Sequence record: OZ196593.1
Direction: 5' to 3' (one strand)
DNA: 64,000 nucleotides
Each line of letters starts with the position of its first letter. Position 1 is the stretch's first letter. A model generated the notes under the pieces. The model was given only the letters and a program-made list of their open reading frames with translations. It did not search any database and was not told where the DNA came from. This document shows positions 10,393 through 36,331 of the stretch, piece after piece. The translations under genes were made by a program, and so were the position numbers.

Positions 10393-10430
10393 AAAAAAGG
10401 GCAGTCTGCGTAATGCAAACTGCCCTTTTT
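10392..10430. terminator. bidirectional terminator
   Basis: A8-GGGCAG...CTGCCC-T5 between convergent genes. Confidence 0.75.
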
Positions 10431-10442
10431 GTTGGTCACTCG

Positions 10443-11006
10443 TTATTTCTGGTCGGTTAATTTCTCTACCCTAACATCTAACGCGTCAATGCGTTCTTTC
10501 AGCATGTCCGCCTCAGAACCAGTGAATCGGTCGCTACTAACTGCCTCAACTTGAGTTTGCACTTTAGCAAGTTCAGCTTCAAAACGCCCATCTTTCTGGT
10601 TTCGAGCATCGATCTTGATACCCAATTCTTTCTGAGATTCGTACAATGCATCATACGAATTACGCAGATTTTCATCCGCTGCCTGTGATGTTGCTCTTAG
10701 AGATTCTACACTTGATCCAAGTCTGCCGTACTGCACTAACATTTCATCTTGTTTTTTCACGATGAGAGATTGTTGTCCCTCTAGCGAAATAAGTTGCTGT
10801 GCTTGTGTAGCATCGGTTAATTTAATGTCGGTAATCTCTTTCATAATCGCGTCGTACTGCTTGATGTTGGTCTCGCCTTGCGCTTGCACTATTTCTAGTG
10901 CTTCCTGCATTCCACCATACTGAGTCGCGACGCTCAATGAAGATATTGATAGAGGAATAAGAATCGTCCCAACCACAGCTAATGCCGCTTGCCAGAACTT
11001 TGTCAT
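10443..11006 (-). CDS. N-terminally membrane-anchored coiled-coil protein (holin or spanin candidate by position)
   Basis: one N-terminal hydrophobic helix plus heptads; follows the last tail-fibre gene, as T4 holin t does. Confidence 0.4.
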   Translation of the reverse strand: MTKFWQAALAVVGTILIPLSISSLSVATQYGGMQEALEIVQAQGETNIKQYDAIMKEITDIKLTDATQAQQLISLEGQQSLIVKKQDEMLVQYGRLGSSVESLRATSQAADENLRNSYDALYESQKELGIKIDARNQKDGRFEAELAKVQTQVEAVSSDRFTGSEADMLKERIDALDVRVEKLTDQK

Positions 11007-21065: not shown

Positions 21066-22496
21066 TTATAAAGCGTATCGGTCGACGCCGACAGTCTTCA
21101 GCATGATTTTCACTGGCTCAAGCTCACCACCCAACAGCGACGTTAGAATTGAAGGGCTGCAACCCGACACTAACGCTGTGTTCGCTTCACCTGATTTAAC
21201 AGGCACGTTGTCTAGACGACCACGCAAGTTCCAGAACACGAGCTGCGGCATTTCGTAGCCCGCTTGAACGTATAGTTCTTTGATTGCGTCGAAGTTCGTA
21301 GTGTTACGAGTATGCCAGCCACCGCCAGAACGTGCTTGGTCGAATTCCATATCGCTCATGATAAGCAATTTGGTTGGCATTTCGTCTTGCGACAAGTTTG
21401 CCGTACGAGCGCGTTCAAGAAGAACTTCGAAGCATCGTGTGATGTTCGTACTCATATCTTCACCAGAGCGTTGCATGTTGTCAAGACGCGACTTCAAGCT
21501 ATCACCCGTCAACTTGTGAAAGTGTGGGTTGCTTGAGAACGAAATGAATTGATCTTTGAAGATACCCTCATTGCGTTCAGCGACGTAGATGCCAAGAGAC
21601 ATCGCAACGTCTTTACACGTCACAGTACCACCGTGTTCACCGTTGATACCACAGCCCATAGAGCCAGAAACATCAACAACTGGAATCACGCGTTCGTCAG
21701 AGCCTTCCATGTAGTTCGGTAGAGCTTTCCATTGCTCATTCGCAACACGATGGTCACCCATTTTAACGCTGCGAACAACGTCGTACGGGTAAACAGCACC
21801 AGCATTGATCTTCGCTTCACCTTTCACAAGCGATGTGATGTACTCACCGTATGCAGATTCAGCGTTACGACCGAATGCTTTCTGATAGCGTGCAGACGCT
21901 ACAGATGGCAGTTTGCCGAACTCGATCTCGTCCCAATTACGAGCACACATCTTCTGTTCAACAGTGTCAGACAAAAGAGAGATCACTTTACGCCACTGCT
22001 TCGCGTTTACACCAACCGACTTGATTGTGCGCTTGAACACGATAGCGTTTTTGCTGCGCTCACGAGGAAACCACTTAGCAGCAAGCGCGTTTTTGTCATT
22101 GACAATCGCGTGCGTCCAAAGAGTGATAGCATCAGCTTCAAGAGAAGTACCGAACGCAGATACTAAGTCATCGAAACGACCGAGTTCTGGGATCTTGCGC
22201 ATAACTAGACGCGCCACTTCTGGTTGTTCTTTACACAGACGTGCAAAGATTTTGCGGAAAGTACCGCGCTCACCTGCACCGCCACGCACGTCGCGAGACC
22301 ATAGCAAGATGCGAGTTGCAAGCTCAGGGTTTTCACCGAATGCGCGATTAAACGCAGTTAGTGACTGATCATTACCGCGCATAGCGCCGATAGTGAAGAA
22401 CAAGTTTAGACACTCGTTACCCGAAGTGCTGTGCGTAACTGCACCGTTTGCTGTACGTGAATCGTTTGATTGCATAGCGTTCATAAATGCTGACAT
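21066..22496 (-). CDS. DUF2828 + vWA protein (Ro60/TROVE-like RNA-binding by inference)
   Basis: RTANGA..STSG..LNLFF, RDVRGGAGER, GRFDDL, AAKWFPRE, MIDAS VVDVSGSM, LLIMSDMEFD, FWNLR. Confidence 0.75.
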   Translation of the reverse strand: MSAFMNAMQSNDSRTANGAVTHSTSGNECLNLFFTIGAMRGNDQSLTAFNRAFGENPELATRILLWSRDVRGGAGERGTFRKIFARLCKEQPEVARLVMRKIPELGRFDDLVSAFGTSLEADAITLWTHAIVNDKNALAAKWFPRERSKNAIVFKRTIKSVGVNAKQWRKVISLLSDTVEQKMCARNWDEIEFGKLPSVASARYQKAFGRNAESAYGEYITSLVKGEAKINAGAVYPYDVVRSVKMGDHRVANEQWKALPNYMEGSDERVIPVVDVSGSMGCGINGEHGGTVTCKDVAMSLGIYVAERNEGIFKDQFISFSSNPHFHKLTGDSLKSRLDNMQRSGEDMSTNITRCFEVLLERARTANLSQDEMPTKLLIMSDMEFDQARSGGGWHTRNTTNFDAIKELYVQAGYEMPQLVFWNLRGRLDNVPVKSGEANTALVSGCSPSILTSLLGGELEPVKIMLKTVGVDRYAL

Positions 22497-22531
22497 TGTT
22501 ATTTCCTCATGTTGTTTGCTGTATAATGTCT
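22492..22531 (-). promoter_or_regulatory. putative translational operator (helix-ATA-CAGCAA) over the RBS and ATG of the DUF2828 gene
   Basis: GACATT (22530-22525) pairs with AATGTC (22497-22492), which contains the start codon; the loop holds ATA-CAGCAAAC and GAGG. Confidence 0.7.
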
Positions 22532-22543
22532 AATATGTGATGT

Positions 22544-22572
22544 ATTATACACGCTTAATCAAGCGCGTAAAC
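22544..22572 (-). promoter_or_regulatory. early promoter of the DUF2828 gene
   Basis: GTTTACG-16 nt-TATAAT with TG extension; palindromic spacer CGCTT-GATT-AAGCG. Confidence 0.7.
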
Positions 22573-26231: not shown

Positions 26232-26430
26232 CAGACATTCGTGAACAGTTTTAAAGTCTTTCGCATTAATCACATTTGACTTTCATGTTTAACGATACAT
26301 GAATCCCTACCAACAAGTTGATAGTCTTACCTTCGAGTTTATTGCTTTAAGTCACCGAGAATGCGGCTATGCGTTACTCTATCTCTTATCTCTTATTTAA
26401 GTTTTGTTAGTTGGTTGCTGTACAATGTCT
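26232..26430 (-). ncRNA. stand-alone motif RNA (~200 nt), helix-GTA-CAGCAA family
   Basis: AGACATT-GTA-CAGCAACC ... AATGTCT closing helix; internal hairpins TTCATG/CATGAA and AAAGTC/GACTTT. Confidence 0.65.
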
Positions 26431-26440
26431 TTGCAAAATT

Positions 26441-28805: not shown

Positions 28806-29018
28806 CTATTTTAACTCTGTGACGCCTATATTTTTCCAATCAAACAGACCATCGACATCTTCAAGCGATTCGCCAGTCACGTCTGCAATATAAGCAGCGA
28901 CTTTCGATTCGATTTCGTCATTACTTAGAGACTCATCAACAGTGAAAATCTCTTCGTTGTTATTACCACCGAATGTGCCGTTAATGTCGTATTCACACCA
29001 AACTGATATGTATTTCAT
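28806..29018 (-). CDS. hypothetical acidic protein
   Basis: 70-aa ORF with GAG RBS. Confidence 0.6.
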   Translation of the reverse strand: MKYISVWCEYDINGTFGGNNNEEIFTVDESLSNDEIESKVAAYIADVTGESLEDVDGLFDWKNIGVTELK

Positions 29019-29043
29019 AATGTCTCACAAAGTTAATAAAATA

Positions 29044-29118
29044 TGGTGCTCCCGGACAGACTCGAACTGCCATAACCTGATTACAAAACAGGGATAATCG
29101 CCTTTATATTACGGGAGC
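29044..29118 (-). tRNA. tRNA-Thr(TGT)
   Basis: loop TTTGTAA, CCA. Confidence 0.85.
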
Positions 29119-29122
29119 GAAA

Positions 29123-29236
29123 CTGAGTGTCGTTTATACCGCGTCTCCAAGACCTGAGATACCAACTCAGCATGGGATTCGAACCCACCGACGTTTCTTG
29201 TATCGAAAGAAATTTTAAATTGCTGTAAACACTCTT
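29123..29236 (-). ncRNA. circularly permuted tRNA-like RNA (YrlA/Y-RNA-like topology)
   Basis: GAGTGT-TTA-CAGCAA / hairpin TTTCTT-TCGATAC-AAGAAA / T-arm GTGGG-TTCGAAT-CCCAT / closed acceptor CTGAG-TTGGTAT-CTCAG / D-like GTCT-TGG-AGAC / ACACTC. Confidence 0.75.
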
Positions 29237-29243
29237 AGTATTT

Positions 29244-29317
29244 TGGCTGGGGATAACGGACTCGAACCGATACTGCGAAAGTCAAAGTTTCGTATGCTGC
29301 CATTACATCAATCCCCT
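29244..29317 (-). tRNA. tRNA-Gln(TTG)
   Basis: loop CTTTGAC, G73, CCA; A1-A72 mismatch. Confidence 0.88.
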
Positions 29318-29325
29318 ATTGTTCT

Positions 29326-29550
29326 TTAGCGACTCGAATTGATCTCATCGATCATTCGTTTAGCTAGTTTCGTAGCTAGTGCTTTATCAGCATCGCCAGT
29401 TGTTTCTATGTCGTATGCAATTTTACTCACATACTTTGAGTCTAGCGCACCCGCTGATTGTTTAGACCAGTGATCCTTGACTTTCTGATATTTCGTCATG
29501 TCAATCGAATCTTTTGTCGCTTCACCCAAAAATTCTGCTAATGTTTTCAT
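29326..29550 (-). CDS. internal head protein candidate
   Basis: exact TATAAATA late promoter at 29580-29587; N-terminus MKTLAEFLGE resembles the T4 capsid-targeting sequence. Confidence 0.65.
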   Translation of the reverse strand: MKTLAEFLGEATKDSIDMTKYQKVKDHWSKQSAGALDSKYVSKIAYDIETTGDADKALATKLAKRMIDEINSSR

Positions 29551-29834: not shown

Positions 29835-29912
29835 TTAAGACACTGTAATCGTTTGGTTTTTTTTCTTCAAATAAAAAATACTGGTTTGTTTGCAGAATGA
29901 TTACTATCTTAA
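29835..29912 (-). ncRNA. minimal motif RNA (78 nt), helix-ATT-CTGCAA family
   Basis: TTAAGATA/TGTCTTAA and GTAATC/GATTAC helices enclosing ATT-CTGCAAAC and an A/U-rich loop. Confidence 0.65.
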
Positions 29913-32554: not shown

Positions 32555-32669
32555 TGGCTGACCGATGCGGGACTCGAACCCACGACCACGTGCTTAACAG
32601 GCAATTAGAAATGCGGTAGCGATACTTATCAATATCATTTACGTGCTCTACCACTGAGCTAATCGGTCA
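32555..32669 (-). ncRNA. tRNA-Asn(GTT)-like RNA with a 38-nt insertion in the anticodon stem
   Basis: canonical D and T arms; removing 32603-32640 restores CGTGC-CTGTTAA-GCACG; CCA end. Confidence 0.75.
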
Positions 32670-34575: not shown

Positions 34576-34698
34576 TGGTGGAGAGTGCGGGATTCGAACC
34601 ACGCGGCCAAAAGATTTACTTAGTTAGTGTTTGCAGCATGAATACTTGACAATATTCTGTCAACGTTCTTTTGCTCTACCAGACTGAGCTAACTCTCC
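34576..34698 (-). ncRNA. tRNA-like RNA whose anticodon loop is replaced by a ~52-nt motif module
   Basis: acceptor GGAGAGT/ACTCTCC-ACCA, D, T and AAAGA/TCTTT stem intact; the loop contains a hairpin then ATG-CTGCAAAC. Confidence 0.75.
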
Positions 34699-34710
34699 AT
34701 TTAAAACACA

Positions 34711-34834
34711 TTGAGCAGGGTGCAGGATTCGAACCTGCGTCACGATCTTAGAATGATATGCTGTTTGGGTTGCTGAATACAAGCTATACAACTTGCGTTT
34801 ATGCTACGTGTGCTAGCCACTACACCAACCCTGC
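34711..34834 (-). ncRNA. tRNA-Arg(TCT)-like RNA with a 49-nt insertion in the anticodon stem
   Basis: removing 34758-34806 restores CGATC-ATTCTAA-GATCG; ends in TCAA (no CCA); 17-bp extended terminal stem. Confidence 0.75.
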
Positions 34835-34883
34835 TCAATGTGTTCTAGTGCAATGCCATATGAACTCACATGGCATCACTGAA

Positions 34884-35019: not shown

Positions 35020-35087
35020 ACTATGAATACGAGTGCGAGAAGATATACAATCAAATTGAAACACCTCGCTAAAAAGTTAGAGCATAT

Positions 35088-35208
35088 TGGTCGTGCGTAC
35101 TAGAATCGAACTAGTCCCACGATCTCCTAATGATATGCGTTATTGGTTGCTGAATACTTACTTGTCAGTAAGCGTATGCTACGTGTGCTGCCACTACACC
35201 AACGCACG
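35088..35208 (-). ncRNA. tRNA-Leu(TAG)-like RNA with a 47-nt insertion in the anticodon stem
   Basis: removing 35135-35181 restores CGATC-ATTAGGA-GATCG; ACCA end; 21-bp extended terminal stem. Confidence 0.75.
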
Positions 35209-35223
35209 ACCAATATGCTCTAG

Positions 35224-35631: not shown

Positions 35632-35883
35632 TTACGATTGAATGATAATACCGCTTTCCGTCTCACCGCGCTCAAGAGCTGCGTGCTTAATCTGTAGTTG
35701 TGCTACTGCTTGTTGAAGTTCTGTGATCGTCTGATCATATAGCTTCATGTTGCTTTGCATGTGTTTAATCTGATCGCTCTGCAAACCAACGATATAGGTA
35801 AGCAAGATGATGCTTTCATTATCTTGCAGTTCTTCACCGTCGTTGTATTTCTTCAGAACAGATTGAATTGTAATATCAGCCAT
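35632..35883 (-). CDS. coiled-coil hypothetical protein
   Basis: start revised to MADIT. Confidence 0.6.
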   Translation of the reverse strand: MADITIQSVLKKYNDGEELQDNESIILLTYIVGLQSDQIKHMQSNMKLYDQTITELQQAVAQLQIKHAALERGETESGIIIQS

Positions 35884-36331
35884 TGTTTTCAGCCCATGAC
35901 AAATCGAGTGGTTCAACGTATTCGTCTACAAGTCGAACTTCGGCTTCGACGAACAAGGGAGTGATTGCATCGTCATACGAAAGCGTGACGTGCGGAGTAT
36001 AGTCAGGGTAATCGTGAGTACCACCGATAGAGATAAGGTCTTCATGACGCGCTACAAGCTCAGGACATTTCATCTTCGCAACAACTGCGTGTTTGCCGTC
36101 TTGAGTTTTCCAGCAATCGATATACTCAATAGTTGCTACGAATGTCGTATCAACGGCAGGCACATCAATTTGATTGCGACTGTATAGAACAGTGACGTGA
36201 AATTTATCTGGATCTAAAGGATTTGCTAGACGAAGCGATGTCTGCAAGCGAACTAACTCTTGTTTACTCGATTCGTCTAGTTTGATACCAACGTACGTCC
36301 CCTGACCTTCAAGGAACGTAGATAGTTTCAT
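35876..36331 (-). CDS. 57B: 2H phosphoesterase gp57B (Acb1 family, anti-CBASS)
   Basis: FHVTVLYSR and YTPHVTLSY HxT motifs; WKTQDG; position next to 57A. Confidence 0.88.
   Translation of the reverse strand: MKLSTFLEGQGTYVGIKLDESSKQELVRLQTSLRLANPLDPDKFHVTVLYSRNQIDVPAVDTTFVATIEYIDCWKTQDGKHAVVAKMKCPELVARHEDLISIGGTHDYPDYTPHVTLSYDDAITPLFVEAEVRLVDEYVEPLDLSWAENNG

Follow-up and report, generated by a model that had tools for sequence, protein, structure and literature searches.

Besides animals, about 5% of bacteria and a handful of phages are known to have Y RNAs and their protein partner Ro60, whose roles in bacteria and phages are poorly understood. The criteria for the YrlA type of Y RNA include binding by the Ro60-type protein, tRNA-type modifications (pseudouridine 55 and dihydrouridine) and recognition by tRNA enzymes. 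In YrlA (RF02553 in Rfam), both ends of the RNA form a terminal stem and the remainder consists of a T arm, a closed acceptor and a D arm, as in a tRNA opened at the anticodon end; the YrlA loci have been defined as lying within 4 kb of a Ro60 (TROVE) orthologue and on the same strand, and a motif near the 5' end, GNCGAAN0-1G, is the proposed Ro60 contact (PMC4201824). Here, we analyse an element located at positions 29123-29236, on the - strand, of a 64,000-nucleotide (nt) stretch of sequence record OZ196593.1 (the window), which is 100% identical to the Vibrio phages K566/K567 (255 kb, KVP40-like, Straboviridae). We consider it probable that this element is the gene for a stable non-coding RNA of ~110-125 nt, which is the Y-RNA-like partner, of the YrlA type, of a Ro60-like phage protein.

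The element lies within a cluster of 26 tRNA genes called by ARAGORN on the - strand at 26.4-34.2 kb of the window. It is contained in the 125-nt gap between tRNA-Gln (29244-29317, - strand) and tRNA-Thr (29044-29118, - strand), 9 nt past the end of tRNA-Gln at 29244 and 6 nt before the start of tRNA-Thr at 29118, and it is without annotation in every phage record examined. As checked by a script on the - strand of 29123-29236, all the segments named in a preliminary description of this sequence are present in the order given there, that description having omitted TTTAAAA (29219-29213) and a G (29171). The two ends form the terminal helix P1, with the 5' strand GAGTGT (29234-29229; GAGUGU) pairing with the 3' strand ACACTC (29130-29125; ACACUC), the latter being preceded by AAACG and followed by AGU. 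Directly 3' of the first strand of P1 stands TTACAGCAA (29228-29220), the single-stranded conserved motif UUACAGCAA, which we propose to be a putative protein-binding bulge. Further along come a side hairpin, TTTCTT/TCGATAC/AAGAAA (29212-29194; UUUCUU-UCGAUAC-AAGAAA), and then CG (29193-29192) and TCG (29191-29189), which supply a junction-helix strand and the variable region. In the 3-bp junction helix J, which stands in for the anticodon stem, the 5' strand CGU (29191..29193) pairs with the 3' strand GCG (29142-29140), described earlier as G and CG. Between the two strands of J lie the T arm GTGGG/TTCGAAT/CCCAT (29188-29172; GUGGG-UUCGAAU-CCCAU), whose loop UUCGAAU is canonical, the acceptor-like stem CTGAG/TTGGTAT/CTCAG (29170-29154; CUGAG/CUCAG), which is closed by the conserved loop UUGGUAU, and a reduced D arm GTCT/TGG/AGAC (29153-29143) with a GUC/GAC stem and a GG-containing loop. 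Finally, GTATAAACG (29139-29131) lies between the 3' strand of J and ACACTC. The side hairpin had been called anticodon-like; it is a side arm and not an anticodon arm.

The preliminary description had made its reading depend on conservation in related phages, and such conservation is found: six KVP40-like vibriophages (K566, F86, nt-1, VS1, KVP40 and ValKK3) carry the element in the same gap between tRNA-Gln and tRNA-Thr, with blastn identities of 93% for F86 and of 72-75% for nt-1, VS1/VS2 and the KVP40-type phages. The ValKK3 copy was located by model R1, which was built only from the six vibriophage copies and gives 111 bits on the element. In the alignment of the six orthologues (A2), 97.5% of the cells are paired for the structure described earlier plus the 3-bp junction helix, and six compensatory pairs occur (two in the T arm, three among the five pairs of the closed acceptor and one in the junction helix), as compared with 0-1 in controls where the partner strand was slid by 1-3 columns. 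When the structure was not supplied, RNAalifold recovered five of the six helices, namely the terminal helix, the side hairpin, the T arm, the acceptor hairpin and the D-like hairpin, and the minimum-free-energy fold likewise includes the terminal helix, the T arm, the closed acceptor and the D-like hairpin. P1 is invariant among the KVP40-like phages. With distant homologues added, in a 10-sequence alignment that was made by R1 and is biased towards the structure by its fitting to the model, compensatory changes occur at 18 of 27 pairs (2-4 in slid controls), among them five of the six pairs of P1. The stem of the side hairpin (29194..29212) is invariant in the six vibriophages while its loop varies, and three of its five pairs covary in the wider set of homologues. 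A pair of the C27-G43 type, proposed before, is borne out as well, with columns 52/106 showing the three states C-G, U-A and A-U. We also place tentatively a 4-bp helix P2, read from the sequences as UUUA/UAAA in K566 and F86 and as UUAC/GUAA in the other four, which is compatible with all six and has two compensatory positions. The fold predicted for the element is thus largely shown by covariation, and both the covariation and RNAalifold support the YrlA-like topology claimed earlier, in which the terminal stem is followed by the T arm, the closed acceptor and the D arm. The motif UUACAGCAA is kept in all the homologues, from Vibrio to Mycobacterium phages.

Moreover, the module formed by P1 and the motif recurs within the same phage. 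A 'mini' paralogue, GUAAUC-AUUCUGCAAACAA...ACG-GAUUAC (29842..29906, - strand), which was found by R1 between tRNA-Trp and tRNA-Asp, has no tRNA-like domain; such a short paralogue is present in all six vibriophages, with a compensatory variant, GCAAUC/GAUUGC, in KVP40. The common module can therefore be defined as AACG, a 6-bp helix, and U(U/A)NCAGCAA(AC), which immediately follows the first strand of the helix. It is noted that two further sequences resemble this module. One, at 26353-26432 (- strand) just past the last tRNA-Ser, is a weak match (16.6 bits, E 0.17) to model R2, which was built from mini elements only; it starts with AAGACAUU-GUACAGCAACCAAC, its closing helix has two mismatches, and it may be a degenerate module. 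The other, GCUUGC-AUACUGCAA...AGAAC-GCAAGC, is a conserved 85-nt module RNA in the tRNA cluster of KVP40 (L006, 9348-9432, - strand), which is present in four relatives (KVP40, nt-1, VS1 and ValKK3), a K566 counterpart not being detected by the regular expression.

The proposed partner of the RNA is the 476-residue product of a gene at 21066..22496 (- strand), in which Pfam at E <= 10 finds DUF2828 and DUF7788 and nothing else, and whose orthologues carry the name 'RNA-binding protein' in RefSeq records, that of KVP40 among them. The AlphaFold2 model of this protein (32-sequence alignment, pLDDT 76, pTM 0.68) conforms to the Ro60/TROVE architecture, a putative ring of alpha-helical repeats with a C-terminal vWA domain. 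With this model, the only strong PDB matches found by Foldseek are to Ro60, both of them full-length: the Ro60 of Thermus phage phiLo (9l5y; E 2e-7, TM 0.53-0.55, identity ~15%) and the complex of Ro60 with misfolded pre-5S rRNA (9nep; E 4e-6, TM 0.55). The remaining PDB matches cover the vWA domain only, with a query-normalised TM of ~0.25. By its predicted fold, the DUF2828 protein is Ro60-like. It is found by tblastn in 711 phage records, including those of mycobacteriophages, where the orthologues are 30-34% identical and annotated 'Ro-like RNA binding protein', and at least 7,966 related clusters are present in the protein database.

The module is present, too, on the mRNA of this protein. 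At 22488..22533 (- strand), the 5' untranslated region of the DUF2828 mRNA contains the helix and the UACAGCAA module in the form GACAUU-AUACAGCAAACAAC-AUGAGGAAAUAAC-AAUGUC, the leader 22533-22488 reading in full UUA-GACAUU-AUACAGCAAACAAC-AUGAGGAAAUAAC-AAUGUC-AGCA, with the Shine-Dalgarno sequence in the loop and the AUG in the 3' strand of the helix. Upstream of the module, a promoter-like site, TTTACG-16-TATAAT (22571-22544), ends at 22544, so that the DUF2828 mRNA has the module right at its 5' end. The arrangement is kept in KVP40, nt-1, VS1, F86 and the distant contig L132, and the helix covaries, with GACAUU/AAUGUC being replaced by GACAUA/UAUGUC in L132. When R2 was run unfiltered over the 64 kb, its own training sequence was followed, as the best matches, by this leader at 27.7 bits (E 3e-4) and by the element at 26.4 bits (E 6.5e-4). 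From the sequence, the leader is likely to be an autoregulatory translational operator, of classic layout, that mimics the RNA ligand of the protein, and this copy is the most direct in-silico indication of the module as a putative DUF2828 binding site.

The association of the RNA with the gene extends to other phages. In each unrelated DUF2828 locus, the top R1 match is an element adjoining the gene, with scores of 40.3 bits in Felixounavirus TP1, 40.0 in Klebsiella phage KP2025, 35.5 in marine contig L128, 34.2 in Mycobacterium phage Faith1, 29.6 in Bacillus phage PJN02 and 27.7 in Enterococcus phage EFDG1; with R2 in seven further loci, all 14 of the matches with E < 1 are on the strand of the gene, nearly all of them within ~2.5 kb. 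The homologues in other lineages lie from 40 nt to ~2.2 kb from the DUF2828 gene and, in the loci described next, on its strand. In TP1, DUF2828 is the first gene before the tRNA cluster, whose first tRNAs are interspersed with three mini elements and a tRNA-like one (10396-10524; E 6e-6 with R1). In KP2025, the gene is followed by two elements of the mini and two of the tRNA-like kind. In Faith1, the gap behind the Ro-like gene is taken up by three matches, of which the middle one has the form GGACUC-CUACAGCAAU..., T arm, closed acceptor, D arm, ...GGAGUCC-AGU. In the marine T4-like contig L128 (880-1011), GAGUGA-UUACAGCAAACAAAC is followed by a 5-bp junction helix, a T arm, a closed acceptor, a canonical D arm and UCACUC. 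In Listeria, Enterococcus, Bacillus and Campylobacter phages, the R1 or R2 matches are directly upstream of the DUF2828 gene. In marine contig L127, whose protein is 53% identical, GGUUCC-UUACAGCAAAC...AAAC-GGAACC begins 40 nt past the stop codon, and the neighbours of DUF2828 are an Rnl1 RNA ligase, a polynucleotide kinase/phosphatase (PNKP) and a 2H phosphoesterase. Across the phages, the neighbours of DUF2828 comprise Rnl1/Rnl2-type ligases, PNKP, 2H phosphoesterase, RtcB and tRNA clusters. A scan of IMG/VR for GAGTGTTTNCAGCAA gave 80 loci, mostly chance occurrences, none of which is convincing by R1 (L060 and L076 score 21-25 bits).

Several observations at these loci are recorded here in their own right. 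Downstream of DUF2828 in L127 (11474-11900) and in L129-L131, conservation extends past the mini module into a longer non-coding region, where a second motif, GGUACAGCAAAAAGUAC, and other conserved blocks are found; this suggests a larger RNA in the marine clade. In L128, the permuted element is immediately followed (1010-1095, + strand) by a tRNA-like sequence with an encoded CCA and an odd D region, for which neither ARAGORN nor Rfam makes a tRNA call; an Rfam tRNA match (1093-1166, 40.9 bits) is just downstream. An RtcB-type 'tRNA splicing ligase' in Listeria phage cka15 (L138, 5852-7063) and an RNA ligase in GAP32 (L141, 1510-2775) lie within 1.5 kb of DUF2828, adding to the RNA-repair neighbourhood of L127 and L129.

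In addition to the element and the mini paralogue, the phage carries the module in a third form, in four tRNA-shaped chimeras, all on the - strand. Chimera A (35080..35220) is tRNA-shaped, with an 18-bp terminal stem and a loop-closed module at the anticodon position, and chimera B (34707..34842) is like A with a 14-bp terminal stem. Chimeras C (34579..34698) and D (32559..32668) match the Rfam tRNA model and have inserts of 52 nt with the module and of 49 nt with a more diverged motif, respectively. In all four, the module replaces the anticodon loop and is closed by a GNNA-type loop, and each of them is kept in four or five of the five KVP40-like relatives compared. They are orthologous to tRNA-Pseudo-3, -4 and -5 of KVP40 and to tRNA-OTHER of phage 6E35.1a, chimera D being annotated in the latter as a tRNA-OTHER pseudogene. 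The motif helix of the chimeras covaries strongly between the phages (in A, for instance, CUUACU/AGUAAG, CAAGUU/AGCUUG, GUAAUC/GAUUAU), which shows the chimeras to be maintained RNAs despite their annotation as pseudogenes. The terminal stems of A and B extend the acceptor stem, show compensatory changes between phages and have no CCA end; these two cannot be ordinary chargeable tRNAs. It is noted that upstream of the chimeras, on the same strand, an open reading frame at 35876-36331 encodes a gp57B-like 2H phosphoesterase (weak TIGR02258 match, 24.9 bits) that is annotated 'RNA ligase' in KVP40, F86 and ValKK3.

We propose that the chimeras at 32.6-35.2 kb are the same RNA as the element in the other circular permutation. 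For comparison, the chimeras were cut in silico in the loop of the motif hairpin, their acceptor ends were joined, and the resulting sequences were aligned to the element and to a Felixounavirus homologue. The permuted chimeras align with z = 2.3-7.4 as against -0.9 to 1.4 in the native order; for chimera B and the Felixounavirus element TP1_d, z is 7.4 permuted and 0.8 native. The linker introduced by the joining favours the comparisons with K566 and KVP40 by at most 14 points and leaves that with the Felixounavirus unaffected. The D arm of the tRNA-like element of TP1, GGUGUAAUGGUAGCAC, is nearly equal to that of chimeras A and B. As for the earlier claim of an exact circular permutation, the order of the parts stands by these z scores, and 'exact' is too strong because the D arm and the acceptor differ in size: the closed acceptor of the element has 5 bp, as against 14-18 bp in chimeras A and B.

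How, then, does the element relate to described systems? Phage T4 has in its tRNA cluster two small stable RNAs, rnaC and rnaD (species 1 and 2), which are released by tRNA processing, and the element is like them a small RNA inside the tRNA cluster of a T4-type phage, rnaC also having a T-arm-like hairpin. Homology was rejected: with R1, the match is confined to the T hairpin (11 bits), and a CAGCAA module was not seen in the rnaC/rnaD sequence. The permuted tRNA genes of Cyanidioschyzon merolae and the two-piece permuted tmRNA mature into functional tRNA and tmRNA, respectively. The element shares with them the circular permutation of a tRNA-shaped RNA gene, but it has neither an anticodon loop nor a free acceptor end. 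The 'tRNA-Pseudo' genes of KVP40, to which chimeras A-D are orthologous, are annotated as pseudogenes; the permuted element is unannotated in every record examined.

The closest likeness is to YrlA (RF02553, PMC4201824), with which the element shares the terminal stem of both ends, the T arm, the closed acceptor, the D arm and the opening of the tRNA at the anticodon end. It also has an extra stem-loop before the T arm, as YrlA sometimes has, shorter sibling RNAs with no tRNA-like domain (YrlB there, the mini elements here), a position on the same strand as the gene of a Ro-type vWA ring protein (Ro60-like here by predicted fold), which is near in other lineages, and RNA-repair genes nearby. 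The parts follow the order of YrlA, with the D arm having a 3-bp stem and a GG loop here and being canonical in the homologues. By contrast to YrlA, the stem-side motif is UUACAGCAA(AC) and not GNCGAA(N)G, the partner DUF2828/DUF7788 has no TROVE sequence signature, the element is inside a tRNA cluster 6.6 kb from the gene, and the same phage has the non-permuted form too. On the Rfam YrlA model, those homologues that have a full D arm reach 32-40 bits (E 1e-5 to 3e-3), which is significant but below the gathering score of 69; among them are KP2025 (40.1 and 34.3 bits) and L128 (32.4 bits, E 0.0025), while Faith1 has 21.7, so that the relatives range over 22-40 bits. The only YrlA match in the window, 34640-34766 (- strand, 28 bits), is an artefact of tandem tRNAs, made of the T arm of chimera B and the D arm of chimera C; Chen et al. 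have warned of this artefact in YrlA searches (PMC4201824). Another likeness is to Yrl1/Yrl2 and Ro60 of Thermus phage phiLo (PMC12135203; 9l5y), where a Ro60-type ring and Y-like RNAs are likewise both encoded by the phage, but the phiLo RNAs are of the stem-bulge-stem kind with a CGAA motif, lie directly upstream of the gene and have no reported tRNA-like domain. The literature searched contained neither an account of RNAs associated with DUF2828 nor one that treats the KVP40 chimeras as Y-like; earlier mention of the copies in cluster L mycobacteriophages is possible.

Some results weigh against the reading of the element as a Y-RNA-like partner of a Ro60-like protein. The search with the Rfam YrlA model that the preliminary description had called for gives no match on the element at E <= 10 in 551 nt (28900-29450), nor does any other Rfam family, either at its gathering threshold or at E <= 10, and the element thus falls outside RF02553 (at least 69 bits). 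The GNCGAA motif is absent from the 5' region of the element, where UUACAGCAA is conserved instead, and the D arm of the vibriophage copies is vestigial, with a 3-bp stem, a 5-6-nt loop and a single G-U change among them. The folding energy as compared with shuffled sequences is not significant (z = -0.84). A loose regular expression for motif plus helix is not enriched in the 64-kb window (5 found, 3.3 expected), its enrichment being confined to shorter tRNA-region loci (5-6 found, 0.6-0.9 expected), and in alignment A5, where several of the mini elements were chosen by a pairing-requiring regular expression, their 100% pairing is partly by construction. As to the protein, phmmer, the PDB profile search and Pfam at E <= 10 detect no sequence-level similarity of DUF2828 to Ro60/TROVE, and the Ro60 link is drawn from a medium-confidence model and from annotation. 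The DUF2828 gene, though on the same strand, is 6.6 kb from the element, beyond the 4 kb of the YrlA-locus definition (PMC4201824). Moreover, R1 and R2 find no element in GAP32 and only a weak match in Aeromonas AsFcp_4. Because the topology is that of YrlA while the Rfam score and GNCGAA are not, we describe the element as like a YrlA-type Y RNA but not as a member of RF02553; it would be a YrlA-like variant, distinguished by a conserved motif that is its own and by a Ro-like partner of divergent sequence.

Other explanations can be considered. One is that the tRNA-like RNA acts without DUF2828, either as a decoy or sponge for tRNA-targeting defence nucleases of the host or for tRNA-modifying enzymes or as a platform for RNase P or RNase E in the tRNA precursor. 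The canonical T loop and tRNA-like core, the position inside the 26-tRNA cluster and the 6.6 kb that separate it in the window from the proposed partner gene would all fit, as would the fact that the chimeras replace exactly the anticodon loop, which is the target of anticodon nucleases. If this were true, however, it would not be explained why the non-tRNA part, P1 and UUACAGCAA, is the most widely conserved, why mini versions exist with no tRNA-like domain, and why the same-strand module occurs beside DUF2828 in many unrelated lineages and on its 5' untranslated region. We therefore regard an RNA acting without DUF2828 as unlikely. Another explanation is that the element is a circularly permuted tRNA gene as in Cyanidioschyzon merolae, with the transcript being circularised and re-cut into a working tRNA. 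The order of junction strand, variable region, T arm, acceptor 3' strand, loop, acceptor 5' strand, D arm and junction strand is indeed as this would have it. But the order of the halves is all that fits: P1, the motif and P2 replace the anticodon loop at the junction, the ends forming P1 and the motif; the acceptor is closed by the conserved 7-nt loop UUGGUAU, with no discriminator base or CCA; its stem has 5 bp, the D arm is vestigial, and the mini paralogues have no tRNA part. Over 29123-29236, neither ARAGORN nor the Rfam tRNA model (RF00005) makes a call, and the open acceptor and the 7-nt anticodon loop of a tRNA are both missing, so that a working permuted tRNA is very improbable here.

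It might also be argued that the element is a decaying pseudogene resembling tRNA-Ile(GAU) with chance hairpins in the spacer and no function. The upstream ACTAAGA can pair, imperfectly (5/7), with the GCTGAGT after the T arm, and the hairpin loop TCGATAC can be read as a GAT anticodon loop. The comparison of the orthologues and the covariation contradict this: the acceptor pairing is lost in F86, nt-1, VS1 and KVP40, the hairpin loop varies freely, the local helices covary, and the element is kept across genera, with homologues in phages of other bacterial phyla. A pairing of CUGAGU with a 3' ACUCAG was rejected in the same way, since both it and the decayed tRNA-Ile need pairings that are not preserved in the orthologues. 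We give the pseudogene next to no chance. Note also that a weak Hammerhead_3 match at 28907-28974 (- strand; 14 bits, E 7), within a small open reading frame, was taken as chance.

Based on the reading of the element as the Y-RNA-like partner of the DUF2828 protein, the following pathway can be envisaged. The element would be transcribed within the long - strand tRNA precursor and, judging from the geometry of the gap, freed by ordinary tRNA maturation, with the RNase P cut at the 5' end of tRNA-Thr leaving a 6-nt 3' tail on the element RNA and the 3' processing of tRNA-Gln leaving at most 9 nt at its 5' end. The RNA would then fold into the 6-bp P1, the UUACAGCAA bulge, P2 (tentatively), the side hairpin, the 3-bp junction helix and the tRNA-like core, the last consisting of the canonical T arm, the acceptor stem with its conserved closing loop and the miniature D arm. 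P1 together with the UUACAGCAA bulge would be the putative site for the Ro60-like ring protein DUF2828/DUF7788. As the module in the leader of the DUF2828 mRNA covers the Shine-Dalgarno sequence and the start codon, the protein would repress its own translation once the RNAs are saturated. More speculatively, the tRNA-like core could be a tRNA-shaped handle that links the ring to tRNA-handling enzymes or to enzymes of RNA repair or decay during infection, and through this handle the complex might have tRNAs as its targets, for repair, quality control, decay or counter-defence. Such a role on tRNAs is suggested by the recurrence of tRNA clusters, ligases, RtcB, PNKP and 2H phosphoesterases, together with the known Ro systems, among which are the Rsr-YrlA-RtcB operons and the Ro60-Y RNA-PNPase complexes (PMC4201824, PMC7790460, PMC12135203).

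In a wider form, the proposal is that of a very widespread and hitherto undescribed phage ribonucleoprotein system. Its Ro60-like DUF2828 ring (711 records, more than 7,900 clusters) would bind RNAs that have a 6-bp helix and UUACAGCAA and come in three forms, namely the mini form, the YrlA-like permuted tRNA and the tRNA whose anticodon loop is replaced by the module. The protein would control its own translation through the copy of the module on its mRNA, and the complex would act on the tRNA pool of the phage or host in repair, quality control or counter-defence against anticodon nucleases. We put this forward tentatively, as a possibility to which we give a little less than an even chance of being right in all its parts.

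Finally, we note what would follow if the proposal is true. A fold and RNA ligands could be assigned to a DUF protein that hundreds of sequenced phages encode, and the phages with DUF2828 include laboratory models, namely Felixounaviruses (E. coli K-12), nt-1 (Vibrio natriegens) and cluster L phages (M. smegmatis). The 'pseudo-tRNAs' that have long been annotated in KVP40-type genomes would be explained, and the presence of both circular permutations in one genome would constitute a natural experiment on which parts of the RNA matter. The leader of the DUF2828 mRNA would provide a simple and testable autoregulatory operator. Moreover, with tRNA clusters and with RNA ligase, kinase and phosphoesterase as neighbours, a role of the system in tRNA repair or counter-defence would be directly testable.

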